Positions 1,534 to 56,125 of a stretch of DNA of 64,000 bases are shown here, piece after piece. The DNA lies in the NCBI GenBank assembly GCA_001179505.1, contig CDMY01000259.1, positions 82,090 through 146,089 on the forward strand, read 5' to 3'. Origin of the DNA: Vitrella brassicaformis CCMP3155 (Eukaryota; Protista; Chromerida). Both the position numbers and the translations under genes were made by a program. The notes beneath the pieces are model-generated. The model was not told the origin of the DNA, did not search any database, and worked only from the letters and a program-made list of their open reading frames with translations. How positions within the stretch are numbered: the first letter of the stretch is position 1; each line of letters begins with the position of its first letter.

Positions 1534-1632
1534 ATGGCGAGGGCGAGAGAGGAGAGGCGTAAAGAGGAGGAAGAGGCCAAGAGGAAACAGGTGGGATGGA
1601 TGGATGGATGGGTGGGAAGGTTGACACGCACA

Positions 1633-1667
<35 letters not shown>

Positions 1668-3592
1668 GGAGGGAGAGAGAGAGAGACGAAACCAGGTACC
1701 AGCGAGATTTCTTTGGCCTCCCTGTCATCTTGCCGGTGTGTGCTGCCACCTAGCCGGTCGAGATGATCTCTTACTTGTCAACGCACCACAAAGACAGAGG
1801 TGAGGCGGGTGGGGGCAGACAGACGAGAACGGAGACATAATGCAGTTTATGCTCTGCTGTTTATTCAAAGGCACGTCAGCAGCGAGCCGCTCTCGTTCTC
1901 GGGACCGCTCGCCTCGCGCCGCACATCGGCGGGTGACCTTAGAGGGCAGGAGGGAGTTGAGCCATGAGCGACAGCGCCAGCGCCAGGAGGTGGTGGCTTA
2001 TTGGGGAGGAGGGGAGGAGAAGTTGCTGACGGACGAGGAGATCGATGCCATGATGCCGAGCGACGAGGAGACGGCGGCCATCGCCGAGCAGCGTCGGCGC
2101 GACAAGGAGAAGCTCAAACCCGAGGACATCGCTGCGGTGCGGAGGCTCATCGCCCTCCACCGCGACCCTCGGGCTACCGACGAGGAGGTCCTACGAGCCA
2201 AGCAGGAGATACCGAGGGAGGTAAGGAGGGATGAGGGACGATGGCAGAAGAGACGCAGAAGAAGAGGCTCAGCAATCATTGTGGCACTGCTGCGTATATT
2301 CCTTCCAGGTGTACCGCACCGTCTGCCATGGGCTGGAGCGCCACGAGATCGAAGACCTCACCAAGCTCCTGATCAGGAACTGCCGCCACGCCGCCTGTAA
2401 GTAGAGAGAGATGGAGAAGGAATGGATGACATGACATTCGACGACATACTTTCCCTTCTTCCCTTTGTCTGTCTTCTCCAGCCGTCATCGCCGCTGAGCG
2501 AGGCGTCCCTCCGGCCAGTTTGTTTCCGCCCCCCCTTCTCCCCCTTCTCGCCACACAATCCCACCCATCGCCACCACCCCCTCCCTCTCCCCCTCCTGCC
2601 CACGGTCCCACCTGCACCGTCGCCCCTCACCGCCACCCACCGACTGAGAAGATCGAGGTGCTGCCCGCCCCTGCGGGCTACTACCGAGTGAAGGTCTCGG
2701 CGGCGGTGTGGGGGGAGGGCGAGAGTGGGGTCACCGGCTGCATCGCCAGCACCGTCGCCCAGCGACCGTGTCAAGCGTGAGGCCAAGAGCGAGCAGCAGC
2801 AGCAGCAGCAGCAGCCGAAGCGCTGCTGCTAAGGAGAAGCAGCACTGCGGCGGTGCCATCGTCTGTCTGCGCACGACGCCGGTCGCCATGCTGGCAACGC
2901 TGCGGCTGGTGCGGGTGGTGGTTGTGCCGGTGGTGGGCCTGAGCGGGAGGCCATCGAGGCCGCCGTGAGCTGCACCCAGCACAAGGCGCTGTGGGCGAGT
3001 TTGGTGAGCTGCTGGTGACCCCGACTCTCTTCCCGCTCGACGACTGCGACCTCTACACAGAAGAGGAAATCGCTATGTGGCTGGCTATGAAACAGCGTTG
3101 CCGACGCTGATGCAGCAGTCTCCCGGCTGATCGTCTTGTCGGCAGCGAAAAGAGGGGGTCGTCAGACAATGGAGACGCCACGATTGGTGCGGGTGAGGCG
3201 CTGATGGGTTTGCCGGAGGCTGCGAGGGAGGGGGAGAGGCTGGAGGGCAAACACTCGCTGACCACGGCTGCAATGTCTGTGTCTGTGTCTGTCGTTCTTT
3301 TCTGTCTGCAGTCGCGGCGGGTTCGACGCCTCCCCCACTCCCTCCCCCTGTCCCGATGCCCGTCTACTTCGGCCGCCCGCCATACATCCCCCCTCCCTAC
3401 CGCCGCCCCCCCGCCGCCATGCCCCTGGTCAAGCCGGACAAGTGCTGCCTGGTGGAGGGGTGGGAGCGCCTGTGTGAGTGTGTGCATGATGGGGTCGTGT
3501 ATGTGTGTGGGAAGGTCCGGGACTTTGTCGTGTGGGTGTGGGAGGGCTGTGTGTGGGTGGCGACATGTGGGGGGGCCTGCTGCGTGTACTAA
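1534..3592 (+). pseudogene. Family-X gene copy 1: helical module exons, Pro-rich linker, Cys-rich tail; probably degenerate
   Basis: Spliced exons LLTDEEIDAMMPSDEETAAIAEQRRRDKEKLKPEDIAAVRRLIALHRDPRATDEEVLRAKQEIPRE|VYRTVCHGLERHEIEDLTKLLIRNCRHAA; terminal ORF 3356-3592 ends DKCCLVEGWERLCECVHDG...WVATCGGACCVY. In-frame stops and frame changes occur between 2780 and 3110. Homologous to 16.9-19.3 kb. Confidence 0.55.
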
Positions 3593-5312: not shown

Positions 5313-7159
5313 ATGGTGACACAGCTCTCCAAGGACGACAGCTGGATCGATGAGGGGCTGAGAGACCGCCATGGTGGTCGGGATGATTGGCCGTGCGAGT
5401 CGAGCGTCTCCCTCAGCAGGAGGGTGCCCTTGCTGGGGCCGGGCACGGAGTCAGTGGGATCACCACATGTCGAATGCCCTGGTGTCGCGGATACAGCGGC
5501 TGGCGGCCCATCCAGGGGCACCAACACGACAGGCTCCCGCTGCCGAGATTCGACTCAGCACAGCGGCTGATGTTCGCCCGTCAGCACGCGAGGCGCCACC
5601 TGCCGACCTTTGACTATGGGGATCGAACAGCGGGCGTCCCGTGGCCACGGGCAACGGCCTCTACGGCGTTTCTGATCGCAGCCCTTCTCCCATCTCGCAA
5701 ACCCACCATATCTCGACAGACGTCACGGCAGCCCTCGCAGCTGGAAAGAGTGGGGAGCGAATGCGCCATGGCCGTCATTGGGCGGGTCTGCCAGATGCTG
5801 CCCGCCCCGGAGGTGCGGGCGCCTAACGCACCACTCCCTGGCTGCGTTCGATGCCGCGTCGTTTGTCAGCTACCGGGCGGCATCCGCCTGAGTGCTGGCT
5901 GGTTTAAGAGAGATGGAGGCTCTTGAGATGCTCATTCCGGCGTTACAGCTGTTCGCTCTGCTGGACGCGTGTTTGCCGCCGCCAACGAGAGAGGACGAGA
6001 CCCCCACGCCGCACAGAGAGACCGGCGGCCTGCCCCACGTGGCCATACTGTCAACCCGTCTGGGCAACGGCATCGTGCTCGCAGCTGGGGCGTCCGTCGG
6101 CTCTCATTAGGGCTACTCCCACCCCCTCGTCAGCATCCCAGAGATCGCTGGAGGTGCGTCTCGACAACGTGCCTCGAGAATACCACCATGACGACTCAGG
6201 CATCTTCCCCAGCCCGCCAAGCTTTTCCTGGAGGTCTTCTTGCGCACACTGTTGCGGGGCGACACAGCCACGAGCACCAGCCCGCCGCCCCGCCGGCTGG
6301 GGACGGCCGAGCCGCCCACACTCGAGCGGCGGCACTCTCAGAGACGCAGGAGCGAGACCCTGCAGCCCCCTACCTTTGCCCTGGTGAAGCCGGCCCAGTG
6401 CCTGACCATCAATGTGTCTTCCGAGCACCTGCACCTCATTCTGCAGCTCCCAAGCACTCCCCAGATGGACAGTGCGCATACGACGAGGGGCATTGCCCGG
6501 CAGCTCTCGTCGGTATGGCTGACCAAGGCAACTGCGGGTAAAGGGGGATGGCGCGGAGAGATGGCAGCTGTGTTTGGTTGCGAGGAGGGGGGGCAGCGGC
6601 CTGGCGAAATCCGTCCCGAGGTCGCGGCAGCTGTCGCGGAGCCACGCGAAAGATAGGGGTACACGAATTGGCGTCCATGTGCAGGTGAGTAAGCGGGGGC
6701 ACCAGGGACGAAATACAGACAGACAGACAGACAGACCACACTCCATGTATACTGTTTGTCATTGTCAGGCGGTTGGGTGTCACGTCAAGTTCGCCGCGTG
6801 GGTACTCGTTGAGACTCGGGGGGCCAAGGCATGCCGCACCCACTGCACTCTTCCTGAGGGTGAGTCAGACGCACAGACGAGATGGGTGGCTGTGCTGCAT
6901 GGTGGGTATGTGGCGTCTGTGTGAATCGTCAGGAGTGCCGGCGATGGGCACCGCTGGCCCTCTCATATTCAACCCGATCAGTGCGTCAACATCGACCTCT
7001 CCCCCTACTCCCTCCGCACACCCACGCCCCCATCCCTCCACTCACCGCCAAACCGGCCCCGGCAGAGGGCGACCCCTGTGTGTGTACGGTGCCCATTCAG
7101 TCAGCTGTATGTCCTTCGCGAGACTGCCTGAGGGGGTGGGCGTGATGACATATGAGTGA
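5313..7159 (+). pseudogene. Degenerate coding-like region, function unknown
   Basis: A single frame interrupted by several stops (MVTQLSKDDSWIDEG...*...LAGLREMEALEMLIPALQLFALLDAC) and further exon-like pieces with plus-strand splice donors; no recognisable motif. Confidence 0.2.
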
Positions 7160-8348
7160 ATGGCATCATGTGATGGTTGTTTGTGACGGCTGTCTGTCTG
7201 TCTGTCTGGCGTTGGCAATGCACTGAATGGTCCGGACATGTGTGTCTTCTTTTCGTTCTCCCTTCTGTTGGCCGCGCTGCCTAGCTCAGCCCACGGTGCT
7301 AGCGTCGACGTGTGAGTGCCCCTGAGACGGGTGTGAGTTGTTGATGCTTGGCTGTGGGCGACACAGCGCGGCCCTTTTGCTTGTCGGACATGTGCGGCCC
7401 CCACACGTGTGTGTGTATGCATTGCATCCATCGTCGTGTGCTGACTAACTTGAGATCTCCACGAGTGAATCTCTCTGACTTAATCCATTTGTGCCTTCCT
7501 GACGCCTCCTTGCAGTGCCATTGGCTCAGTGTATGTATACTCTGTGTGTGTATTACCTGATTGCACGACTAGAGAGCTGTTTTGTTAGCCATCTGACTGA
7601 CGTACCACTTGATCTGCCGGCCTTCGCAAGGCGGCCGGGGACCTCTTTACCTGACAGACAGACAGACAGGGCGATTCCTTGACTTAGAACAGCCGCCGGA
7701 CCGGTAGCCATCGTACCCTGAGATTCGCTGTGGATTGTCGCGATGCCTCTCAAAAGACCTCAACCAGCACTGGCCGCCGGCTTTGCGCTGTCCCTCAGAT
7801 TAAAATTGTCCAAGACCAACACCAACACAATAGTGAACCAACACAGAGAGAGCAGCCATAATGATTGCAAAACGGCAAGGCGCCAGCGAAGCGCCAGTGC
7901 GAAGCCCCATGGCAGCACGTCTGAGGTGCTCCTTTCGTACTTTGCCTCTCCCGCAAAGGACAGGCGCCGCCACAGCGGCCAACCCACACAGGCGCCTGGG
8001 TGCTGAGGATGGTGCTGGTATGTTTGTCCGTGATTGAGGGTTGGCTGATTGACCCTGTTCATTTCGTGAGAGACCGACAGACTCTGCCTGCCGCTATGAG
8101 TAAAGTATTTTCACACCTACACAACCTGGCCATGAGTCGCTCATCTGCTTTCAGGGCCTCCGTGGGGCCGCCCACGGGTGGTGTGCCATGACACGGGCAG
8201 ACTGTGGGCAGCAATCATTCAGCGTCTCGTGTGTCTATGAGCAGGCCAAGTCAACAGAGCAAGACGTCTGGCAAAATTGAAAGAACGGCACAAATGGGAA
8301 TCATCACACAGCTACACAGCAGGCTACGTCACACACTCAATTAATTAC

Positions 8349-11300
8349 CTAGCCTCCCTGGCTCCCTCCCACTGGTGCCCCTCCCACTCCCCCTCCCCCC
8401 GGCTGTCCTCCTCCTTGTCCACCACGGCCATCCCCACCACCACGACCCATCCCGCCGCCACGTCCCGCAGCCGCAGAGGGCGGACCACTCGGAGAGGAGC
8501 CCAACGACGCGAAGGGTGGTACACTGGACGGGTGCACGGAGAGCGCTGCAGGGCGAGGGCCAGGGAGGGGATATAGTCGGCTGAGCGAGCGAGCAGCGGG
8601 TCGGTGTATGGTGAGCGTCGGGCGCACGTTGGGCATGGCGGGCTGGGGAGTCCGCACGACGGAAGCTGGTGCTGACGAGGGGCCGGAAAACACCCCACCA
8701 CCACCATGGCCAGCAGAGAAGTGCAAGAATGCCACACAGACAGGACGCCACAGCTATGTCGAGTTGTACGCCAGCAGGCTCATGCATACCTGGACGGATT
8801 GTATGTTGCGGAGCGTCCGGGTCGGCAGAACCATCTCCCGGTGGAAGGCCCCCTGAGGGTCCCCAATGGCGACTGACAGCATGCAAAACAGACCAATGAC
8901 TCATTCACACATCGATTGCAACGGTGTCCGGTCAGCGAACCTTGGGGTGCAGCTGTCATGGTCTGATCGGTCGTCCATCGGTCGAAGTCCAGCCACAGGT
9001 CGGTCCGGCTCGGCCGACCCACAAACTCACGGGCACGTCCAGTCCCTGTGCACAGAGAAAGGGCTGAGACGATTGGTGCGGCGCCAGCCCGCATTACTCA
9101 CCTCCTGCAGCCTCAGACGAAGTGAGTATCTGACGCGACGAGTGCACCACACGGCCTGTTGACGCACATCCAGACAGACAGACAGGCAAATCGTGTGTGT
9201 GTGTGTGTGTGGTGTTGCGTGGTGGTGGCGGTGTGTGTACCTGAGTGGTCGACGGTCGCCACAGCATCCACACGACCACCTGTGCAGTGAATCCATCCAT
9301 ACACACGCCCCAGTCAGTGGATTGAGCGTGGTTGTGCCGCCGTCGTTCTCTCTCACCTGCACGGGCAGAACTCGCAGCACCGACAGCAGCAGCAGCAGCC
9401 GATGTGTCGTCACCGACAACAGCACCATTTGACGCACAGACAAGGACCACACACACACCATCGGTGGATGGATGGATGGATGTGAGTGTCGCTTCCTCTG
9501 ATTCTGCATATACCAGCATGCGATCGTGGAGCACCAGCTGCTCGGGATACGGGGGCGCCGGACATGGCTCGATGGGTGCGGGCAGACGGCACCAACAGAC
9601 TGGGCACAGACGAATAGGCGGGAGGAGATGCCTGTAAGTCATGAGAAAGCGACACACAGAGCCCATCCATTGTGTTGCATGTGGGCAGACTCACGCAAGC
9701 TCGTCAGGGCATACCTGAAACGACTGAATCGTCTGTAACATGTTGGCTGCACTCGGTGTCATCGGGCCGGCGACAGTGCGGGTGTAGACGCCCTCGGGGT
9801 CCAATGCACGAACTGGCAGAAAGCAAAAGCAAACAATTGTGACACTCGATATCGGCCCGCTGCCCACATCAACGAACCTTGATGCGCCACCGTAAGGATT
9901 TCCTGCATCTGCAAGCCGGCGACGAGGATGAGGGTGTTGAGTTGGGCCTGCAGGGAGGCGAGATTGCCGCCACCGCCACCCGCCATACCCCCTGTTTGCG
10001 AAGGAGAGAGAGGGGGGAGGGACGTATAAGTGGCTGGCTGACGATTTCTCGTTGGCTGTCTGTGTGTGTACCTGAAGCCGCGCTGCCCCCAGCAATGAGA
10101 TGCTCATGCGATGGATCGACAACAGAACCTGACAGAGAGACAGACACGACACACATGGACACGTAGGTGGATGGATGGGTTGCTTACTGCGATGGTCACG
10201 ATCTGTGTGAGCCGCAATGAGTGCCTGGTCATCCGATGGGGCACGACCATCACCTGACACACACCAACACACACTTAGGCAAGACCACACCGTTTTCCAC
10301 CCCCTCTCCCATCATCCATCCATCCATACCTTGCTGCGCTGTAGTAGGTGCGATGGCTACGTCAGAGCCCGCAGATGGCTCGGCCAGCGCCGCCGTCTCA
10401 CCGCCCCCGCCTCCAAACACACACACATCGAATGTCGGGTGTGCTCTCCCCTGTGTTGACGAACGACCTACGTGTCTGTGAGGTCTGCAGTGGCATGCAC
10501 AGTCGCTCGTCCACCGCATCATTGCCGTCAGCTGACACACAGACAGGGCAGAAAGGAACGTCGTGGTGCCCTTCTGTGCCTTGTGTGTGATAATGTTCGG
10601 TTCGCCCACTCCAGGGCTGAAGTGGGCGAAGCGAACGACCCAGCGGCACCCGTCCTGATGCGAAACGACATACATCAGACAGACACGTCAGTGCACACAC
10701 CATCCTCAGTCAGCACTATCCGCTCACCGCTGCTTCTGGAAGGCGGGCCGGGGGCCTCTGACGGGCGAACGTCGTCTCGCATCAAACCTGCAGCACACAC
10801 AACACACATGTGTGTGTCTATCAGCATGCCTGTGTTCTGAGCATCTCACTCGGCACACTGGAAGACGATGCTGCCGCTGCTGCCGCTGCACTTGCACTCG
10901 CACTCGCCTGCACACACACAGTCCCACACACAGAGATGCACACAGACGGCATGCCGCCAATCGACGCATCGAAGTTCCCATCCTCCCGTCCGTCCAGCCA
11001 TCCCATCCCACCTGTCTGGCGTTGGCCTCTTCCTCCATCCGCTGGCGCGCCTCCTCTTGACGCCTCTTCTGCTCCTCCTCGACTTCCCTGACCAGGGCTT
11101 CGAGCTTTTCGGGCTCCAGCTGGGGGCCCTCCGCAATCTCACGCCGCATCTGACACCACACACACACACACACACGGACACATGTCAATACATGGACCCC
11201 TCCGCTCCCACACCCACACCCACCCACCCACCCACTTACCGACTCTGGGGTTGGGAAGAACTCGTCATCGGCGGCCACGTAGCCCCTTTGTCGCTGCTGT

Positions 11301-11638
11301 ATGCTGGCCAAGTAGGTGGCCATGCGCGTGTGGTGGATGTACAGGTCGTGCAGGAGGGCGTCCAGGTCTGGGTCGGGTTCGACGTGTCTGGTGTGGGCGA
11401 AGAGCCGCACGAGGGTGGGGAGGATGTCGGCGAGGCGGTCGCGCTGGACGGCCGTGTGGGTGACAGCGTGCAGATCCAGCTCGTGTGGGCGGATGGGCAG
11501 CCCTCGCGCATAAGTCAGCAGCCCGGTCAAGTCAGCGATCTGACAACGGAAGGATAGGACAGGACAGGAAAGGTAAGGCCACCCATACACACACCTGTCT
11601 GATCGATCCCCAACCCTCCTCTCTCTCTCCCTCCCTCC

Positions 11639-27997: not shown

Positions 27998-30809
27998 TCA
28001 TGATGCAAACATGTCCACATCGTCCTCCGCCCCGCCGGCCCCACCAGCACCCCTCAGCAACGTGTCCATCGCTGACACAACCAGAGGGATGCGGTGTGTG
28101 TGAGTGCGTGTGTTCCCTCCCTCTCTTTGTTCAGGCCGGATGACCCACCTTGTTTCCTCATGTCTTGGTCGAGAGTGCCGTCGGGGAGGACGTCTTGCCT
28201 CTGGTAGACCTGCACGTACGACTCGCTGAGGGCCACCAGCTGCGGCAGCACCGCCGTCACGCGCAGATCCTCCATCTCATACCACTGATTCGACGGCTGA
28301 TCAAACATACCAGCGACACACACGACCGCACAATGCCGAAATGCTCGGGTGTGGTGGTCTGATCCCTCCCGCTTTCCCTCCCTCACTAACCGCATGGAGA
28401 ACGTGTGCGCGGTATTTGCCGTCGTGCGGTTTGCCCTCGTGGCACACGTTGGCGATCAGGTCGTACCGGGTCACCGGGTTCTCCTCCTGCGCCTCGGGGT
28501 GCACGTCTACCACACACACACACACACAGAGAGACAGAGAGAGAGAGAGATGCACCCGACCCCACCACCATGTGTGTCTCCACACGTACATTCTCTGAGG
28601 TCGAGGTTCTTGACGGGGAACGTGACGATGGTGGGGTTCTTCTCGAGGAAGAAATTGTTCTTGGAGAAGCGCTTGATGTGGAAGACCAGGTAGGGCGGCA
28701 GGCGCCAGAGAGAGTACCGCTTCACCTGCCCGCGCATCGTCTCGTGCCGCGTCTCGCCGTCGAACTTCTGCAGCAGGTCGAAGATCGGAACCTGATAACA
28801 GAACAGAGAAAGATAGAGCACCAAGAAAACGAGACACATGCTGTGTGTGGCATGTGGGTGGTGTGGATGGGTGAGTGCGGGGGCGTACGGTTGGGATCAT
28901 GTTGCGGTCGAGGGAGTCCTTGAAGATGGGCGAGGGGGGCACCTCCAGGGTCAAGTAACTGAGGCAAGGAGGGAGGGAGGGACGGAGGGGACGGATGTGT
29001 CCGTGGCGGTCGAGCCATCGGTGAGTGGTGTTTGTAGTGTGTGCATGGTTACAGGAACGGGGTCTTGGACTCCTCTGGAGGCTTCACCGACTCATCGGCT
29101 GCACACACACACACACAAAGTGCACGTTCCCCTCCCTGCCTCCCTGTACACCCTCTTCCTCACCGTTGACATCTGACGTCTTGACGAACACATCCCCCTG
29201 GAAACACTGATGCACCACCGAACCTGCACGCCAAACAAACCAGTGCTCAATCGGCCCGCCAGCCGTGTGTGTGTGTGTGCGTACTTCCGGTTTGTTTGTC
29301 TTTGAGTTTGGCGTGTAGCCTGTTCATGAGCCACACAAAGAAGGTCAGGGGGTCCTCCTGCTGCCCGATGCGGAACTTCTTCTCACTCGCCACACCCACT
29401 GCCTGCATACACACACCATGCCACACCATACCACACCACACCAGACGGACACACGTGCATCTGTGTGTCGCTCTGCCCGTCGCTCCCTCCCTCCCTCCCT
29501 CTCCCTCTCTCTGCGTGTCTGTCTCACCTGCATGAACTCGTGTGGCGACACGATGCCCTTGAAGTTGCGCGGGTTGAAGATCTTGCGCAGCAGCTCGCTG
29601 CAATTCAGCAACACCGGGTCGGGCCTCTGCACAAACAAACCAGTAAGACCGTAGACTGCAGCGGGAGGCGCTCGCTTGTGTGTGACTCACTTATTGCACA
29701 CCTGTTTGTGCGAGAGGTCCAGCAGCAGCAGTGCGTTTCGCAGGGGGATCACTTGACACAGAAACTGCACAACGACATTGCAGTAGTCCGTCCGCTTCAG
29801 GTCGTTCAAACCGATGCAGCCTGACACAACACAACACACCCAGTGTGTGTATGAGCGAGCCAGCCTTTCGTGTGGAAGGCTCTCCCGCCCATGCCGTCCC
29901 ACCAGGGATGAAGTCGGTGCCGTCGAGTGCCTTGCCGTAGACGAACCGCTTGCTGCTGAGGTCCTTGACCTCATCGGGCGTGTACGTTGGCTTCAAGTTG
30001 TACTGAACACACACACAGCCACAGATAGGCAGGCAGCAGGTGGGAAGGGTGCGCCTGTCGTAGCTGTGTGTGTGGGTAGTGCGGCAACCTTGATGTCGTT
30101 GAGGGAGGCGTCCTCGACCAGGTAGTTCTCGGGCAGACAATACACCTGCAGCAATGCACCGCACCCATCAATGCAGCGGTGTGTGCGTGTGTGGCCAGGC
30201 AGGGCAGCCCACTCCAGCCCACGTTGCAGTCGCTGAGGTTGATGTACACGTAGTGCCCCTCCTCCAACGCATGGGTGTACGAATGGGTGTTCTTGCCACG
30301 ACCTGATTGACACACCCATCCATCCATCCATTCACCCACCCAGGCACACACACCTTATCGTCTATCTCTCCCTCCCTCCCTCCCCCCTGTCTGCCCGGCT
30401 CACCCTGGAAGTATTTGCCGCACACGAGGCAGCAGTAGACGTGAAGGTTGGACAGGGTGATAGAGCATAGCTTCTCGAAGTCAAAGTCCAGCAGGTGCCG
30501 ATTCACCGTCCCGAGGTAGGGGCACGTCCGCCGCTGAGGGCGGACTCTCGGCGCCCTCTTCCCGCCCCCTCTCTGCTCCTTCTTGACGATATCCTTCTTG
30601 TCCTCCTCCGCCTCCACCTTGACTGACGCAGTCGACTGCGCATTGTTGGAGCCCGTCACGGTGACGTCGGCCTCGTCATCGGTCTCGCGCTTGATGGGGG
30701 GAGAATAATCGTGCGACCTTTGGGGTGCACGCACCTTGATGCGCTTCGCCGGCGGCGCGTCGGATGCACCAGCCGCCGCTGCTGCTGATGCGCTGGCGCT
30801 CTCGGACAT
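27998..30809 (-). CDS. USP39: U4/U6.U5 tri-snRNP protein USP39/Sad1 (ZnF-UBP plus inactive USP domain)
   Basis: CPYLGTVNRHLLDFDFEKLCSITLSNLHVYCCLVCGKYFQG|RG; GLNDLKRTDYCNVVVQ; FHIKRFSKNNFFLEKNPTIVTFP; YDLIANVCHEG; WYEMEDLRV. Confidence 0.97.
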
Positions 30810-30848: not shown

Positions 30849-30879
30849 AGCTCGCCGAAAAGCTCGCAAATAGATCTGC
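30849..30879 (+). promoter_or_regulatory. Candidate bidirectional promoter motifs (AGCTCGC x2, AGATCTGC) in the 96-bp USP39/RbfA spacer
   Basis: AGCTCGC at 30849 and 30861, AGATCTGC at 30872; the same words recur in other divergent spacers. Confidence 0.55.
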
Positions 30880-42121: not shown

Positions 42122-42135
42122 GCCTCAAGGGCCAG

Positions 42136-42158
42136 AGATCTGCTGTGTTGAGCTCGCA
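42136..42158 (+). promoter_or_regulatory. AGATCTGC and AGCTCGCA in the 92-bp divergent spacer
   Basis: AGATCTGC 42136-42143, AGCTCGCA 42151-42158, between ATGs at 42121(-) and 42214(+). Confidence 0.55.
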
Positions 42159-42213
42159 AGTGGGCGATCCGTCGAGAAGGGCCGTAGAAACATCCAGCCG
42201 TCGAAGCATCGTC

Positions 42214-45868: not shown

Positions 45869-45947
45869 TTGACAGATGGCTGACGAGGATGAACCAGGCT
45901 GCGGATCTGCTTGACGAGAGGGCAATGAAACGCACAAGGGGGAAAGG
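45614..45947 (-). repeat. Leader/5'UTR segment duplicated at 63522-63868
   Basis: Near-identical direct repeat. Visible differences include a 3-nt insertion and a 17-nt deletion flanked by CGCCA microhomology in this copy. Confidence 0.95.
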
Positions 45948-45951
45948 AAGC

Positions 45952-45971
45952 AGATCTCTTTCCAGCTCGCA
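45952..45971 (+). promoter_or_regulatory. AGATCT and AGCTCGCA in the methyltransferase/AP2S1 spacer
   Basis: AGATCT 45952-45957, AGCTCGCA 45964-45971. Confidence 0.5.
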
Positions 45972-46047
45972 CTCTGTGAGCGTGGCGAATTCGCTCTACA
46001 CAGAAGCATGGGCGACCAACAACCGAGGGGCCTCTGAGTGAGTGTCG

Positions 46048-46476
46048 ATGATTCGGTTCATCCTGCTGCAGAACCGGCAGGGAAAGACCCGCTTGTCCAA
46101 GTGGTATGTGCCTTTCGATGCTGCCGAGAAGAACAAGCTGGAGAGCGAAATACACCGGGCCGTCGTCACCCGGGACCGCAAGTGGACCAACTTCCTCGAG
46201 TACCGGTCCTACAAGCTCATCTACCGGCAGTACGCCGGGCTGTTCTTCACCTTCTGTGTGGACGTCAACGACAACGAGCTGGCCGTCCTCGAGCTGATCC
46301 ACCTGTTCGTGGAGGTGCTCGACGGCTACTTCGGCAACGTGTGTGAGCTGGACCTGGTCTTCCACTTCGACAAGGTCTACCACGTGCTGGACGAGCTGCT
46401 GCTGGCGGGGGAGGTGTCGGAGACCTCACAGGCCGTCATACTCGAGAAGCTCAGGCTGGTCGACAAGCTGGACTGA
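46048..46476 (+). CDS. AP2S1: AP-2 complex sigma subunit, single exon
   Basis: [20 protein letters not shown]...[24 protein letters not shown]...[34 protein letters not shown]; 142 aa uninterrupted. Confidence 0.95.
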
Positions 46477-47460
46477 ATCATCACGACGGCAGATCAGATG
46501 ACTGAATGAATGATGGCTGGGTGGGCGCAGGGCTGCTCTGCTTGCGTGTGGAAAAGACTGACTGATGCAGCAGATGGGCTGTTGTTTGGTGTGTTCCGTG
46601 TTTCGCTCATCAGCTGTCGACCAGCATTGGCCGAAGCGCTTGTGACGCCGAGTACGCTTCTCTCGGTCGAAAAGGCGTCTCGTACGTCGCAGAGTGGGTT
46701 GGCAAATTCAGGTCGATAGCAGCGAGGTGCGATTAATCGAGAGAGTGCGTGTCCCTGTCTGTGAAATGAAGACGGAAAAGGTGTGTGCTGGGAACCCTTG
46801 TGAATGATGGCTGAGCGTTGTTGCGACCGTCAGTAGATGGGCAGCATCGTGGAGGTACCAAATGCGTTCTTCATCTGTATGAATCAGTCGGACACTAAGT
46901 CAGTCACCAGCCGGCAGCACGTCCACACACTTCCCCCCACACACACACACACACACACGGGGAGAGAGAGAGAGAGAGAGGTCCATTCCATTCATGTCGG
47001 CCAGCAGCAAGGCTCAAAAACTCAGGCACATCGTTCGTTCGTCACATCGACAGAGTGCGACAGAGACACCACCGAGTGAGCTACGAGGGAAAAGGGCCGC
47101 CTGCCTGCCTACCGAGAGAGCTAACCACAACGACACACACACATCCACACACACACTGCCTACCTACCTACCCACCTGATTGACACTGGACGAGCGCATT
47201 CCGCGACGTCCGTCGTCAGCTTTCCTTGAGCAAAAAAAGAACCCTTCCCGACACCCACGACAAGAGAGAGACCACAGGAAACCACAAGGAGAGAAATCAC
47301 GCACCCTCACACCGCCACACCGCACCCACATGTGCCCGATAACGTGAAAAACTCATGCCTGTGTGCCTGGCTGGCTGTTGGTGTCAGCAAATGGGTTGGT
47401 GGTGCCATGCAGTCACTCTACGGACGGACGTACGAAGGCAATCAGCGAGTGTGTGTGAGT

Positions 47461-48123
47461 CTAGTAGAGGTTGTCGGCCTTCTCGAGCTTGACGATCTTC
47501 TCGGCAATGCCCTTCTGCAGCGTCGAGCGGATCTCGTCGTTGATGAACGAGAACGTCTGCATCACACACGTACACACAGACAGCACATCAAGTCCACTGC
47601 ACCGATGCCACCATTCTCCCCCCCTCTCTGCGCCTGTGTGTCTGTGTCGCTTTCTAACTGACCTGTGCGGCAAACTTGGCGACATTGTCTGGTCTGAGGC
47701 AGTAGGCGTTGGAGGATCCCGGGGGGTTCTTAAGGCAGCTCTCGTTCCAGCCGTCGGGGGGGCAGGACACCACTGGGAAGACAGAGTGGTAGGAGGCCGT
47801 CCCGGAGAGCGCGTCGGTGCCGCCCGCACAGCCCACAATCAGCATCGGCTCGATGGAGCGGTTGTAGTACTCCAGGGCCTGCTCCAACTTGCTCGGCTGC
47901 ACACACACACACACACACGGAACAGAGAGAGAGGGAAAGGTGCCATCGATGGATGTGTGTGTGTGTTGTGTTGCGTAGTGTGTTGAGTACACACCTGTTT
48001 GTGTGCGGAGCAGATGCGAATGTGCGAGGGGACGCCGAACTTGGTGAGGTTGTCCTGGATCTTCTGCAGGTGCGGCATGTCCGAGTCGCTGCCCGCAAAG
48101 ATGCCCACACAGCAACTGAATCA

Positions 48124-48157
<34 letters not shown>

Positions 48158-49494
48158 GTGAGGACAGTACGTGTGGTGTGGTGTGGTGTGGTGTGGTGTG
48201 TTGGCCACAAACGTCGCACCCCTTGATGAGTTTCTTTGAGACCAGGTTCATGAGCAGTCTCTTGGGCGGCGTGAGGGGGGAGGCCGGGAACTCAAAGGTC
48301 TGCCCGGTGATTCTCTCGAACACATTGATGTACCGATACACACACTCAACCACCTGACACACACACACACACATCCATCCATCCAGCCATCCCTTGCTTT
48401 GCTGTGCTGTGTTTGTGTTTGTGTGGGTCTGTCTGACCTGTTCCTCTGTGAGTGTGGGGACCGCCTTGCCGGGTTTGAAGCCCTGCTCGAGCAGCACGTC
48501 CCTCACGTACTGCTTGGAGAACTCCTTCACCTTGAGCTCCGGCCTGGCGGCCAGCAGCTCGCTGACATCCTTGTACTGCCCGCCCTTCATGGCCTCGACG
48601 ATCTGCGGCCACTTGGTCTCGAGCTCCTTGGCGTCGCACAGGCGGCTGCTGTCGGGCGTGTTGACCTCGTCAATGACGTGCAGCTTGCCGCTCTCGTCGG
48701 TGCCGAACTCGTACTTGGTGTCGATGAGCACGAGGCCGCGCTTGGCGGCCAGCTCCTGGCCTCTGGCGAAGAGCTTGAGGGAGATGTCCTTGGCCTGCTG
48801 CGCCAGGTCCTTGCCGATGAGGGCCTCCACCTCTTGGTAGGTCATGTTCTCGTCGTGGCCGACCTCTGCCTTGGTGGTGGGGGTGAAGATGGGCGTGGGG
48901 AACTGCTGGAAGCGCAGAAGGCCGTTCTGGACGGGGAGGCCGCAGAAGGTGCGCTCGCCCTTCTCGTATGCGGCGGCCATGCTGCCCCAGAGGTAGCCGC
49001 GGACGATGCACTCGACGTTGAGGTTCTTCATCTTCTTCTGGATGACCACATTGGGGTCGGCGTCGTCGGTCACCAGGGCGTTGGGGATGATGTCAGACGT
49101 GTTCTCGAACGCCCAGCGAGTGATCTTGTTCAACAACTGACCCTGCAAGCAAGCAATCAATCACACACACACACACACACACACAGACGCACACACACAG
49201 ACGCACACACATGGATGGATGGATGGATGAGTGCGCCATCCCTCCCTCCCTCGCCGCCTCTCAACGCTGTGCTGTCCTGCGTACCTTGAAAGGGATGAGG
49301 TTTGGCAGGACGTAGTCGAACGCCGAGACCCTGTCGCTGGCGACCATGAAGACGTTCTTGTCGGTCATGTAGATATCCCGCACCTTGCCCTTCTTGACAC
49401 GACCCAGCTCGGGCAGCAGGCAGTCGTCCAGCGTGTAGCCCAGGTGCTGGCGGATCTTGCTCTTCGTGTCAGACTCAGTCATGACGTGGCCCAT
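47461..49494 (-). CDS. PAICS: Bifunctional SAICAR synthetase (PurC)-AIR carboxylase (class II PurE-like), PAICS architecture
   Basis: PurC: [20 protein letters not shown]|[49 protein letters not shown]. PurE: [20 protein letters not shown]|[20 protein letters not shown]. Confidence 0.96.
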
Positions 49495-49864
49495 TGCTTT
49501 GCTTGACGGACGATGGAACGACGGGAGAGAGGCGACTGGCGGATTAGCTGCTGCGACAAAGGCGAGAACTCACGAGCGCTGAGTGGCGATGGATGAGCAG
49601 GTGGCTGAGCTGGAATGGAGGAAAAGGGAGGGCAGTTTTCGGGGAGACGGCGTCGCATGCGATCCAAGCTCGCATTTTGAGCTCGCAGACGGTGGCGACA
49701 GCAGAAGAGGCCAGGAGACAACGGCAGAGTGCTGCGTGGGCCAGGCTCAGCAGCAAGCTTTGACGAACTCATAGATCAGCCTGTTTGTGCGCCGTTCGAG
49801 GCGGCCAATTCATTGCTCTCGGTGTTGTGAAGGCGTTGGTTGCGTCGGTTCGGTTCGTCCGGTG
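49495..49864. promoter_or_regulatory. 370-bp shared divergent promoter of the PAICS-like gene and PFAS
   Basis: Lies between opposed ATGs; contains the palindrome TCGCATGCGA (49653-49662) and AGCTCGCA at 49667 and 49680. Confidence 0.7.
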
Positions 49865-52800
49865 ATGGGCATAGAGTTCATGGGATCTGACGATGCGCCT
49901 TCGATGAGCGGATCTCCCGCCATCCTGCACTACTACCGCACACCCGGGCTGTCCGAGTACAAGCGGCAGGGCCTCCTGCAGGAGGTCAGAACAGACATCG
50001 CAAGCGATGTGGTGAGCCGCTGAGCCACTCACAGACAGCAGATGGGTCGTGCATTGCCCACACCACCACCTGCCCCTGCTTTTGTGTGTGTCTGCATCAC
50101 TCCGTAGGAGTCGCTGGACACCGAGGTGTGTTACAACGTGGAGGTGACTGCCCCCCTGACGGCCAAGGAGGAGGATGCCCTCACGTACCTCCTTAGCGAG
50201 ACCTTCGAGCAGCAGCAGTTCGGCAGCAAGTCGTTCCTGAGGGAGCTGCATGCCTCGAGGGGCGGCAAGGGCGGCATCCTAGAGGTGGGGCCGCGGATGA
50301 CCTTCTGCACTGCATGGTCGTCCAATGCAGTGGCCATCTGCCACAGCTGCGGACTCACCAAGGTCTGTCTGCCAGAGGCGCACAGAGGATGAGAGGGGAG
50401 GGGATTGTTCCTCTCTCTCGTGTGTGTGTGTGTGCAGGTGACCCGCATCGAGCGCAGCCGACGTTATCTGTTCGCCTTTGGGAAGGCGAGCGACCCCACG
50501 ACCAATGTGCAAGGTCCGGTCCGCAGAGGCATCCGATCCATCGATTTGTGTACGGATCTGTGTGTGTGGATTGTGTTGTGTTGTGTTTCGCCGCATGGGT
50601 CATCAGACTTCCTGCAGGAGGTGGCGCCCAAGGTGCACGACCGCATGACCGAGTGCGTCTACCCTTTCCCCATCACCTCGTTCGAACTCAAAATCAAAGT
50701 CAGCACACACACACACACACACACACAATCTGACAGTATTTGTGTATCTGTTGTGTGCTGTGTCGTGTGCAGCCGGAGCATTGGGTGTCTGTCGACGTGA
50801 TGGGCAAGGGCCGTGCCGCCCTCGAGGCCATCAACAAGGAAATGGGCCTCGGATACGACGAACAGGTCACACACACACAAACACACACACACTCAGAGGC
50901 ACCCACCCCAGACACCCGCTCGTTCATTCGGCCATGGCCCCCCACTGTGTTGTGTGTGCCTTGCAGGATTTGGACTACTACACTCGTCTGTTTCGTGACG
51001 AGCTGAAGCGCAACCCCACGTCGATCGAGTGCTTCGACCTGGCCCAGGGCAACAGTGAGCACAGCCGCCACTGGTTCTTCAACGGCAAGCTCGTCATCGA
51101 CGGCCAGGACATGCCCGAGACGCTCTTCCAGCTCGTCAAGAAACCCTTCAAGATAAACCCCAGATTTAGGTGGGCTGATCTCTGTCGTCCATCGGTGTGT
51201 CTGTGTGACACTCGTTCATTCATTCATTTCGTGGATGGATGCAGCACTGTCGCCTTTCGCGACAACTCGTCGGCGCTTCGCGGCTACGTCCACCAGAACG
51301 TGCACCCATCGCCTGATGTCGACGGCAAGGCCGCGCCCTACAAAGTATGTCTGCCTGCCTGCCACATACAAAGACAGGCATCATCAATTCGCGCATGCGC
51401 ACGTGTGTCTGTCTGTGTGTGTGTGTGTGCCCATCCATCCATGCATCGGTGGATCAGTCTGTGACGAAGGACTACGACCTGACCTTCACGGCAGAGACGC
51501 ACAACTTCCCATGCGGCGTGGCGCCCTTTCCCGGAGCTGAGACCGGCACTGGCGGGCGATTGCGGGACGGGGCAGCCACAGGCCAGGGGTCACTCATCAT
51601 CGCCGGCACGGCGGCATACTGTGTGGGGGCACTGAGAATCCCTGGGTGGGTGAGCGGGACAAAGAGGGAGGGAGGGGGGGTGAGGGGGGCATGTGTGGAT
51701 GGATCGACGTGTGTGTGGGTGATTGGAGTGGTGCAGGTATGACATGGAGTGGGAGGACTCGGCCCGTGAGTGGAGCTACCCGTCAAACATGGCGGACCCA
51801 TTCGATATTCTCATCGAGGTCACACACACACACACACACACTCTCACTGATGACGACTCGACTCACACGTGCGTGTCTCTGAAGCTGCTGTGTCTCTGCG
51901 TCTGCGTGTGTTGCGGTGGTGCAGGCGTCGAACGGTGCGTCCGACTACGGCAACAAGTTTGGCGAGCCCATCATCCAGGGCTACACACGCTCCTTCGGAC
52001 TCAGACTGCCGGACGGAGAACGGTACTCACACACACGCACACACGTGCCCACACACACAACCCGCTCATGTGTGTGTGTGTGTGTGCTGGTGCACTCATG
52101 TGCCGTGTCGTACGACGCAGTCGTGAGTGGATCAAGCCCATCATGTTCACGGGCGGCATCGGGCAGATGGACCACCGACACATCAACAAGGGAGACGCCG
52201 AGAAGGACATGAAGATCGTCAAGATCGGCGGACCCGCATACAGAATCGGTACACACGCACACACACCCATACACAGGCACTCATCGGTCCTCCTTGTGCG
52301 GTGTGTCCACAGGGATGGGTGGCGGGGCGGCCTCATCGATGGTTGCCGGCGACAACCAGGCCGATCTCGACTTCAATGCCGTCCAGCGAGGAGACGCTGA
52401 AATGGAAAACAGGGTACACAACACACACACAAACAGCACACAAGGATAACCCCCAACCAGCGTGGTAATACCTTCCTGCATGGTGTGGTATCAGGCCAAT
52501 CGTGTGATCCGTGCGTGTGTGGAGCTGGGCGAGGCAAACCCCGTTGTCTCGATCCACGACCAGGGCGCGGGCGGCAGCGGCAACGTCCTCAAAGAAATCA
52601 CCGAACCGGGCGGCGGGTTCATCGGTCAGCGACATTCCCTCCCTCCCTCCCTCCCTCCCCCTCTCCCACACACCCCTACACAAAGGGCACTTTCGCTCTC
52701 ACTTCCAATCAGACATTCGGAAGATGTTGTGTGGCGACAAGACCATGTCGTTGCTGGAGCTGTGGGGGGCCGAGTACCAGGAGAACTACGCGCTTCTCAT

Positions 52801-55800
52801 CCGCCCCGAGTCGGTGGAGCTGTTCGACACCCTCTGCAAACGTGAGAAGGCCCCGTACAGCGTCGTTGGGCACATCACTGGTACACTCACACTGACTGCC
52901 CCAATCCTTTCTCCGTCCATCTCATCTCCATCGCTCTATTGTTCTCTGTGTGGGTGTGGGTGTGTGTAGGCGATGGGATCGTGCGTGTGTGGGATGCCGA
53001 GGACGGCACAACACCAGTCGACCTGCCTCTGGAGAAGGTGCTGGGCAAGATGCCACAGAAGGTCTTCAAGAGCGACAGAAAACAGTCCATCAGCAGACCA
53101 CTACAGGTCAGCACGACAGACAGGCAATGAGAGGCAGGCGGGCTGTCATGTGTGTACGTGGGTCGGTCGGTCGGTCGGTTGTGTGTTTGTTGTGTGCAGT
53201 TCCCGGCTGATGTGACGGTCATGAGTGCGCTTGACCGTGTGTTGCGGCTCAGCTCCGTGGGGTCGAAGCGGTTCCTCACCAACAAAGTCGACCGGTCCGT
53301 CACGGGCCTCATCGCACAACAGCAGTGCGTCGGGCCGCTGCAGGTACCACCTCACACAATCACAGACATACACATGGATGGATCCCTGCTGTGTGTCGGT
53401 ATCCGGCCGTCGACAGTTGACTCTCTCCGATGTGGCAGTGGTTGCCCAGAGCCATCTCGGCACGACAGGTGGCGCGACGGCCATCGGCGAGCAGCCCATC
53501 AAGGGCTTCCTCGACTGTGCCGCCATGGGCCGGCTGGCATGCGCTGAGGCGCTGACTAACCTCGTGTGGGCCAAGGTGACGGCTATCGAGGACGTCAAGG
53601 CATCGGGCAACTGGATGTGGGCCGCAAAGGTCAGATCAGAGAGAGGGGAGGGGAACGATTTCTTTCAACGGCTGCACTGCATCTGTGTGTGGTGGGTGTG
53701 TATGGAATGCATGTGTGTGAGTAGATGGAGGGCGAGGCGGCGAATATGTACGACGCTGCCAAGGCCCTCTCGGACTTCATGATTCAGATCGGCATGGCCA
53801 TCGATGGAGGCAAAGACAGGTCAGCCAACCCCACACCAACCCACCCCCCATACACACCCCCTGCTGCCTCCTTTCAGTCTGTCCATGGCCGCGCGCGACC
53901 CCATAGCGAAGGAGACGGTCAAGGCCCCCGGCGAGCTGACGATATCGGTGTATGCGCCGTGCCCCGACGTCAACCTGACCGTCATGCCCGACCTCAAGTG
54001 CGGCGGTGATGGTGTGCTGCTGCTGATCGACCTGGACCTGAGGGGCTGGTGTCTGGGCGGCAGCAGCCTCGCCCACTGCTACGGACAGATCGGCGACCAA
54101 TGCCCTGACGTCGATGTGAGTGGGGGAGGCCACAGACGGGAGAGGACATGGGGGAGAGAGAGTGGTCTGCGGCTGTCTGCAGGCTGCATCGCTGAAGAAC
54201 GCCTTCAACGCGGTGCAGGAGCTGATTAAGAAGCGGCTCATCACCGCGGGCCACGACAGATCTGACGGCGGGCTGATCACCACAGGTGTGCACCCGCAAC
54301 AGACAAGCACTCAACATCGCACACACGTGACAGCCCTCCCTGTGGTGTGTCGTCGCAGTGCTGGAGATGGCCTTCGGCGGCAACTGTGGCGTCACCATCG
54401 CACTCGACAGCCTCCCGGCATCGGTCGACTTCCTCCACGCCCTCTTCAGCGAGGGACCCGGGCTCGTCTTTGAGTGCGCCAAGGCCAACGAGGCGGCTGT
54501 GCGTGAGGTGCTGCAATGGCACGGTATGGGCGCGGCGAGTGTGCATGCGATTGGGGGAGGGAGAAACGACACCAAAGTCGAGGTAGGTTGAGAAAAAGAG
54601 ATGCGGGGGGTGCCTTGTCATGGTGCGGTGTGATGTGGTGTGATGTGGTGTGTGCAGGTGTCCGTGGGTGGCAAGGTGCTGCTGTCCGATGACGTGAGGC
54701 AGCTGCGGGACATCTGGGAGGCCACCAGCTTCCAGTGCGAACTCAGACAGGTAGGTGATAACCGACACACACCACACGAGAGCCTCTGTTCATTCATTCA
54801 CCTGTGTTTCCTTATCATCTCTGCAGTGCAACCCCGAGTGTGTGGCTCAGGAGCGTGACGGCCTCAAGCACCGCACAGCCCCGCCCTTCAAGCTGACCTT
54901 CGACTTCCACCCCACCTCTGACGCCAAGCTCACTCAGGCCGACAAGATCAAGGTCGCCATCATCCGGGAGGAAGGCAGCAACGGCGACAGAGAGGTAGGA
55001 ACCACAGACACACAAGTGTCCGCCCGCCCCACAGACAGACACACGCACACACACGTGTGCCTGTTTGTCTGTGTGTCTGTGTGTCTGGTAGATGGCGACG
55101 GCCTTCCACATGGCAGGCTTCGAGGCGTGGGACGTGACCATGACCGACATCAGCAGCGGGCGCGTCAACCTGCAGGACTTCAGGGGCGTCGTCTTTGTGG
55201 GCGGCTTCAGCTACGCCGACGTGCTCGACAGCGCCAAGGGGTGGGCGGCCACCATCCTGCTCAGCGACAAGCTCAACGGGGAGTTCGAGGCCTTCTACAA
55301 GAGGAACGACACCTTCTCTTTGGGCGTCTGCAACGGTAGGTACTCCAGCCATCAGGCTGGCTGGCTGGCTGGCTGGCTGGCAAGTAGTCGGTCGGTCAGT
55401 TCTGCCACCTGTTTGTTTGTGCGTGTGTGTGGCTTCAGGGTGCCAGCTGATGGCCCTCTTGGGGTGGGTGCCCGGACTTGAGAAGAACATCCCACGCGAC
55501 AAGCAGCCAAGGTGGGCGGCGATCGCGATCGCTCTACTCACACGTGACCTGTTGTTCCCTCTCTGTCTGTCTGTCAGGTTCATTCACAACGCCAGCGGCC
55601 GCTTCGAGTCGCGATGGTCGGCCGTGCGCGTGGAGTCGAGCACATCCATCATGCTGCAAGGTATGAAGCACACACGCCCATCTATCCACCCACACCTCCG
55701 CGGCTCCCTGTTTGACTGACGTCATGTCATGTGCGTGTCTACTAGGCATGGAGGGCTCTACTCTCGGCATCTGGGTGGCCCACGGTGAGGGCCAGGCCTA

Positions 55801-56125
55801 TTTCCCCGACCCTAGTGTGCTCACACAGTGCCAGCGGGACCGAGCCATCCCCCTCACATACGTCGACGACCAGAACCAGCCCACCGAGGCGTACCCCTTC
55901 AACCCCAATGGCTCACCGCAAGGCATCGTCGGCCTCTGCAGCCCTGACGGCCGCCACCTGGCTCTCATGCCGCACCCGGAGCGGTGCATCCTCACCTACC
56001 AGTGGCCGTACGCGCCGCAAGGGTGGACCAAACAGCACAGGGAGGGGGAGCTGTGGGGCCGGCACGTGGCACCCTGGATCAAGATGTTCCAGAATGCACG
56101 ACAGTGGTGCGAGAGAAATGCCTAG
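49865..56125 (+). CDS. PFAS: Phosphoribosylformylglycinamidine synthase (large PurL)
   Basis: [142 protein letters not shown]|CQ, MPHPER. Confidence 0.98.

Follow-up and report, generated by a model that had tools for sequence, protein, structure and literature searches.

Two genes of de novo purine synthesis are oriented head to head, with 370 bp between their initiation codons, in a 64,000-nt stretch of DNA from Vitrella brassicaformis CCMP3155 (the whole of this stretch is referred to below as the window). One encodes a fusion of PurC (SAICAR synthetase) and PurE; the other encodes PFAS, the large FGAM synthase. PFAS carries out step 4 of the pathway and PurC-PurE carries out steps 6 and 7, while step 1 is the task of PPAT. 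Metabolic genes of eukaryotes are usually scattered; where purine synthesis is concerned, the exception given in textbooks is the PPAT-PAICS pair of vertebrates. The Vitrella pair is real, intact and at least partly expressed, and it is independent of the vertebrate unit; no published description of it was found in the literature, though both genes are annotated publicly. Taken as a whole, the arrangement is best explained, with about even confidence on our part, by an ordinary Vitrella bidirectional promoter serving a purine pairing that originated among chromerids and was retained for the coordination of the pathway.

Window coordinates of the public gene calls were derived from L001 (contig CDMY01000259.1 of assembly GCA_001179505.1, Vitrella brassicaformis CCMP3155), a position in the window being 59495 minus the L001 position. 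The window is eukaryotic and intron-rich, with a GC content of 55-65%. PurC-PurE occupies the minus strand (six exons, 499 aa, ATG at 49494, stop at 47461-47463) and PFAS the plus strand (about 27 exons, 1351 aa as annotated, ATG at 49865, stop at 56123-56125), so that the 5' ends face each other across the segment from 49495 to 49864. Both genes had already been called in the public annotation GCA_001179505.1, with the same starts and stops as in our reading of the frames: a 499-aa SAICAR_synt+AIRC protein and, 370 bp off on the opposite strand, a 1351-aa protein with the domains FGAR-AT_N, linker, AIRS_C (twice) and GATase_5. No gene lies between them, and their starts appear to be less than 1 kb apart, judging from the 370-bp distance between the ATGs, from a PurC-PurE transcript that extends to 49643 and from a PFAS start presumed to lie within the spacer. 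A first-pass annotation made from the sequence had described this head-to-head layout, and the coordinates that it gave coincide exactly with the public gene calls and stops. Its naming of the two products as a PurC-PurE fusion and an FGAM synthase agrees with the Pfam, NCBIfam and TIGR01735 matches and with the annotated domains, and the free-living apicomplexan relative that it envisaged as the host is Vitrella.

The exons of PurC-PurE were derived from the three minus-strand frames and GT/AG sites, and each exon was scanned separately against Pfam and NCBIfam. Exon 1 (49285..49494, 70 codons) matches PF01259 SAICAR_synt (E 5.7e-8), has a GT donor after 49285, is covered by transcript contigs L002 and L003, and corresponds to residues 1-70 of the database protein P0001 (499 aa, Vitrella brassicaformis CCMP3155). 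Exon 2 (48438..49142, 235 codons, P0001 residues 71-305) contains the SAICAR synthetase core, with matches to PF01259 (E 2.9e-44) and NF009251 (E 9e-61); a word search with this exon retrieved P0001 at 100% identity. Exon 3 (48220..48353, P0001 residues 306-349) carries the C-terminal end of PurC, aligned to positions 275-310 of the 315 in NF009251, together with the linker; its junctions are seen in transcripts and it ends in phase 2. PurE starts in exon 4 (47995..48115, P0001 residues 351-390), which shows the GSDSD and SAHK motifs and a match to PF00731 AIRC (E 5.9e-10). The PurE core follows in exon 5 (47663..47896; PF00731, E 0.0012), which aligns to human PAICS (2h31) and to the class II PurE of T. 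denticola (3rg8). Exon 6 (47461..47556), placed by transcript contigs and by the tiling of P0001, ends with the TAG at 47461-47463. The six translations tile P0001 without gaps, with one codon split between exons 3 and 4, and all five introns are supported by the spliced transcript contigs L002 (JGI 3300017297) and L003 (Logan ERR558152), which match at 100%. The open frame of exon 1 has no in-frame ATG upstream of 49494. Altogether, SAICAR_synt (PF01259, exons 1-3) and PurE (PF00731, exons 4-5) lie in a single polypeptide, and P0001 carries both.

The gene had been called PAICS-like in the first-pass annotation. This description holds for the architecture and for the PurE half, which matches human PAICS, but fails for the PurC half: human PAICS aligns only to residues 349-497, that is, to the PurE half, and the PurC half resembles instead the long PurC (about 300 aa) of M. 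abscessus and yeast Ade1 (E 2e-42). Among solved structures, the PurE half finds its best matches in human PAICS (E 1e-18) and in the class II PurE of T. denticola (E 1.5e-16), with class I mutases at 1e-8 or worse. It has the SAHK and CPP motifs as in class II, while the AGRSN loop of that class reads AGGTD here.

Fusions of PurC and PurE are widespread in protists, including Perkinsus, many dinoflagellates, the euglenid Eutreptiella and the diplonemid Rhynchopus. A tree built from 22 sequences places the Vitrella protein together with Perkinsus and with the proteins of euglenids and diplonemids (support 100/99), outside the dinoflagellates. P0001 was compared with P0007, P0009, P0119, P0116 and P0073: a 2-aa insert is missing from the Vitrella fusion as well as from the euglenozoan sequences, and a short C-terminus is common to the Vitrella protein and the euglenids. 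Two of these sequences, P0007 and P0009, were considered as Chromera candidates and rejected, the former being from a euglenid (Eutreptiella) and the latter from a relative of Eutreptiella. In copies from Symbiodiniaceae and Amphidinium (P0087, P0102, P0112 and others) the C-terminal half lacks GSDSD, SAHK and AGGTDALSG and gives no PF00731 match; by these features their PurE half looks degenerate. Many metatranscriptome proteins (P0332-P0431), mostly about 330 aa long but in some cases about 700 aa, score near the self-match of the query (454 bits) while covering only about 72% of it, and P0332, which also carries PF07445, scores above it. Scores of this size despite such coverage suggest that these proteins might hold two PurE domains in tandem. 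Finally, a 1.17-Mb metagenome contig with intron-free genes (L005) contains two tandem PurC-PurE copies, at 7075-8508 (477 aa) and 10001-11356 (451 aa), whose sequence is nearest to that of the diplonemid Rhynchopus.

The PFAS gene (49865..56125, plus strand) begins with an exon at 49865-50011 and ends with one at 55746-56125. Its exons were scanned one by one against TIGR01735 and matches were taken exon by exon. Ten exons match the profile colinearly from position 30 to position 1306 of 1307, the exon cores add up to 1338 of the 1351 annotated residues, and the annotated domains make up the full set expected of the enzyme. Both glutaminase signatures are present: the cysteine in GVCNG|CQL, which straddles the junction between the exons ending at 55337 and starting at 55441, and the HPE motif, found as MPHPER in the last exon. 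Two exact-pattern scans of metagenome contigs yielded no PFAS transcript contig, and a large representative search with the last exon returned nothing identical to Vitrella PFAS; among full-length representatives, that exon comes nearest to the large PurL proteins of bacteria (about 48% identity), with animal PFAS at 43%. Neither gene has an N-terminal targeting extension, which in the case of PurC-PurE is deduced from family profiles starting some 20-30 residues in, and both products are thus probably cytosolic as far as their sequences tell.

Introns in the two genes (within 47557-49284 and 50012-55747) are short, 58-142 nt; one PFAS intron, for example, spans 52023-52120. Read in the orientation of the transcript, they tend to be CA-rich at the 5' end (GTCACACACA...) and TG-rich at the 3' end (...TGTGTGTGCAG). 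A run of (CA)3 or longer lies near the 5' end in 13 of 30 introns and a run of (TG)3 or longer near the 3' end in 19, both occurring together in 7 of the 30. Base pairing between the two ends of an intron would be possible.

The spacer between the two ATGs (49495..49864, 59% GC) had been presented in the first-pass annotation as a shared promoter of 370 bp. That figure is correct as the ATG-to-ATG distance but overstates the promoter, as at least 149 bp (49495..49643) are transcribed as the 5' untranslated region (UTR) of PurC-PurE on the minus strand: L002 reaches 49643 and L003 reaches 49576, both at 100% identity. The untranscribed gap up to the PFAS ATG therefore measures at most 221 bp. 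Within 49495-49864 no TATA box, inverted repeat, Rfam family, tRNA or open reading frame with a family match was found, and a scan for sigma-70 promoters and terminators gave nothing, as expected for a eukaryote. What the spacer does contain is two copies of AGCTCGCA on the plus strand (49667-49674 and 49680-49687), 13 nt apart and 24-44 nt past the most distal end of the PurC-PurE transcripts. This octamer is common to all three divergent spacers of the vicinity (42122-42213, 45869-46047 and 49495-49864); by our own calculation, the number of 8-mers expected to be shared by the three spacers by chance is about 0.005. The window holds six copies (30861, 34560, 42151, 45964, 49667 and 49680), all on the plus strand. 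Five of them are in divergent spacers, where they precede the plus-strand ATG by 45-200 nt; one of these five is the copy at 30861, flanked by a minus-strand ATG at 30809 and by an open frame on the plus strand. At two sites the octamer is repeated, fully or nearly, 13-14 nt away, and at three sites AGATCT is found within 20 nt.

An indication of what the octamer might do comes from the neighbouring sigma-adaptin gene. One end of L002 corresponds to the 5' terminus of the mRNA of this gene; it is located at 45965, within the AGCTCGCA copy at 45964. This single data point suggests that plus-strand transcripts start at the octamer, which by its placement is a candidate for a generic promoter or initiator element; the pair at 49667-49687 would then be a possible start for PFAS. 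On that assumption PFAS transcripts would begin near 49668-49681, only some 25-40 bp from the end of the PurC-PurE transcript.

These elements can be assembled into a working model. Two intact purine genes would be transcribed outward from a short shared region, the PurC-PurE mRNA starting at or beyond 49643 and the PFAS mRNA probably no more than 220 bp further on, perhaps at the octamer pair. The architecture would be the ordinary bidirectional one of Vitrella, in which one nucleosome-free region serves both genes, so that they are on or off together at the basal level. The purine pairing itself would have arisen in the chromerid lineage and would probably have been retained for its help in coordinating enzymes of the pathway, within a broader consolidation of purine synthesis through fusions and pairs. 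The gene models, their spacing, the 5' UTR of PurC-PurE and the absence of linkage elsewhere (see below) are observations, to which the model adds the position of the PFAS start, the sharing of a promoter and a selective benefit as presumptions.

Several results weigh against this model. First, the one element that could be recognised in the spacer is a generic one: nothing specific to purine genes was found there, and the recurrence of AGCTCGCA in neighbouring divergent spacers between unrelated genes suggests a generic rather than a purine-specific promoter. Second, the linkage is missing from the other organisms examined. Flanks of 10 kb on each side of PurC-PurE were inspected in Perkinsus marinus, in the diplonemid-like contig L005, in Durusdinium trenchii and in Symbiodinium pilosum, and none of these four loci has a called PFAS within them, although the reach of such flanks is limited in the dinoflagellates, whose genes at issue span 40-50 kb. 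Local tblastn searches of the same loci with five PFAS proteins and 14 Vitrella exons gave no matches, while the Vitrella locus (L001), used as a positive control, gave 99. In the stramenopile Chrysophaeum taylorii neither PurC nor PurE is next to PFAS, whose divergent partner there is an EF-hand protein. The synteny comparison proposed in the first-pass annotation thus went against conservation, adjacency not being kept in any of these organisms as far as the inspected flanks reach. Its claim of independence from the vertebrate PPAT-PAICS unit stands, both on the different partner and on the lack of linkage in Perkinsus, the two Symbiodiniaceae, the diplonemid-like contig and Chrysophaeum. 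No Chromera-labelled protein appeared among the best 120 matches of either word search.

Third, the genome is built in large part of such pairs. Vitrella has 22,817 genes in 72.7 Mb, with a median gene spacing of 92 bp and an excess of head-to-head pairs, and head-to-head clustering has been argued to give only modest co-expression (Woo et al. 2015, PMC4501334). Among the L001 calls, the order in the direction of the window is: a 580-aa protein (-), a 579-aa protein (+), TPMT (-), sigma-adaptin (+), PurC-PurE (-), PFAS (+), a Bax inhibitor (+) and an AAA protein (-). Three of the eight junctions in the surrounding 22 kb are divergent (the count takes in one further, partly fetched gene upstream of the 580-aa protein), which bears out the caution, voiced in the first-pass annotation, that divergent pairs are common in the window. 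The other two link unrelated genes, namely TPMT with sigma-adaptin and the unnamed 580-aa and 579-aa proteins; their spacers measure 179 bp (45869-46047) and 92 bp (42122-42213), respectively, the purine spacer being the longest of the three. With divergent pairs being the rule, the layout alone does not go beyond chance.

PurC-PurE and PFAS may accordingly be chance neighbours that share a generic promoter region, like thousands of unrelated pairs, with neither regulation nor selection at the level of the pathway. We rate this as a strong contender, if somewhat short of an even chance: it is in keeping with everything listed in the two preceding paragraphs, and also with the pair having been noticed after the fact among some 23,000 junctions. 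What speaks against it is that, a priori, the probability for any two of the roughly five genes of the pathway to be neighbours among 22,817 genes is only about 9e-4. The present pair was, however, singled out post hoc. If all pathways are considered across the 23,000 or so junctions, about one same-pathway neighbour pair per genome is to be expected by chance, on a rough estimate, and one pair alone therefore proves little. On present evidence the arrangement may be mere coincidence in a genome made of divergent pairs.

A different origin, in which both genes would derive from one cluster, either ancient or gained by horizontal transfer (a pur operon of bacteria or an ancestral eukaryotic cluster), appears very unlikely. 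The bacterial large PurL proteins nearest to the last PFAS exon are indeed encoded in pur operons, but animal PFAS is nearly as similar, and the bacterial loci pair purL with purF, purM, purN, purB or purH and never with purC or purE. Furthermore, the PurC-PurE fusion occurs unlinked to PFAS in the lineages in which it is widespread (Perkinsus, dinoflagellates, euglenids, diplonemids), and the numerous introns in both Vitrella genes are spliceosomal and of the local type. Gene content and phylogeny led us to reject horizontal transfer or descent from an operon for the pair. Least probable of all is an artefact of assembly or annotation, in which the genes would not be truly adjacent or one model would be wrong, for DNA runs from several independent studies contain fractions of 0.95-0.97 of the sampled words of 47300-53200, which excludes misassembly, two assemblies supplied transcript contigs that follow the window colinearly as far as 49643, a position within the spacer, and the exon models equal P0001 exactly.

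An ordinary bidirectional promoter, with a pairing of chromerid origin retained for pathway coordination, thus stays our preferred explanation, at the even confidence stated at the outset. If it is true, a second divergent purine pair, formed independently of the vertebrate one, would constitute a small, clean case of convergent genome organisation. The pair also offers a tractable test of co-regulation by bidirectional promoters in chromerids, free-living relatives of the apicomplexans that lost the pathway. A bolder proposition is that the ten steps of the Vitrella pathway are encoded in about five genes, four of which would be divergently paired: PFAS and PurC-PurE as one pair, purB and a PurF-PurD-PurM-PurN fusion as the other. 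Gene fusion and bidirectional promoters would then jointly coordinate the enzymes, an operon-like arrangement in a eukaryote; we put this forward tentatively and consider it rather doubtful. Should such a second pair exist, the chance of two disjoint pairs among five genes would be about 1e-7.

Purine synthesis has been listed as present in chromerids and lost in apicomplexans, and the enzyme supplement to that study gives EC numbers only, without gene identifiers (Woo et al. 2015, PMC4501334). In rows 413-416 of its Figure 2-source data 1, EC 4.1.1.21 is filled for Chromera and blank for Vitrella. The PurE domain is nonetheless present in Vitrella, as the C-terminal half of the protein scored under 6.3.2.6; the blank entry means that this half of the fusion was missed, so that the pathway table as published is incomplete here. 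The organisation of these steps may be different in Chromera.

On its other side, PurC-PurE converges with the sigma-adaptin gene (ATG at 46048, plus strand). Contig L002 is unbroken over 45965-47559 (L002 positions 1551-3145) and so runs from the PurC-PurE mRNA into sigma-adaptin; the stops of the two genes are 985 bp apart, and over this distance their 3' UTRs must therefore adjoin or overlap.

Three known systems invite comparison with the Vitrella pair. In vertebrates, PPAT (GPAT) and PAICS (AIRC) form a bidirectional promoter unit (Brayton et al. 1994; Gavalas and Zalkin 1995, as cited in PMC2871058). As far as the account given there goes, the resemblance lies in two de novo purine genes, one of them a PurC-PurE bifunctional gene, diverging over tens to hundreds of base pairs. 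The partner differs, being PFAS (step 4) in Vitrella and not PPAT (step 1), and so does the PurC half, which in Vitrella is of the long yeast and mycobacterial type; moreover, none of the other eukaryotes that were inspected has kept the Vitrella arrangement. Bacterial pur operons (purB-purL-purF-purM-purN-purH, L009/L010) likewise have purine genes clustered around a large purL, but their genes are free of introns and transcribed polycistronically, and purL is not joined there to purC or purE; there is no sign that the Vitrella pair derives from them. An ENA contig encoding P0290, the closest full-length representative of the last PFAS exon, has a bacterial large purL diverging from a purF-purM-purN operon across about 140 bp. 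With the generic head-to-head pairs of chromerids (Woo et al. 2015, PMC4501334), finally, the purine pair shares the short spacer, the lack of a TATA box and a motif common to the neighbouring spacers; it differs from them in that both partners belong to one short pathway and that its spacer, at 370 bp, exceeds the 92 and 179 bp of its neighbours.

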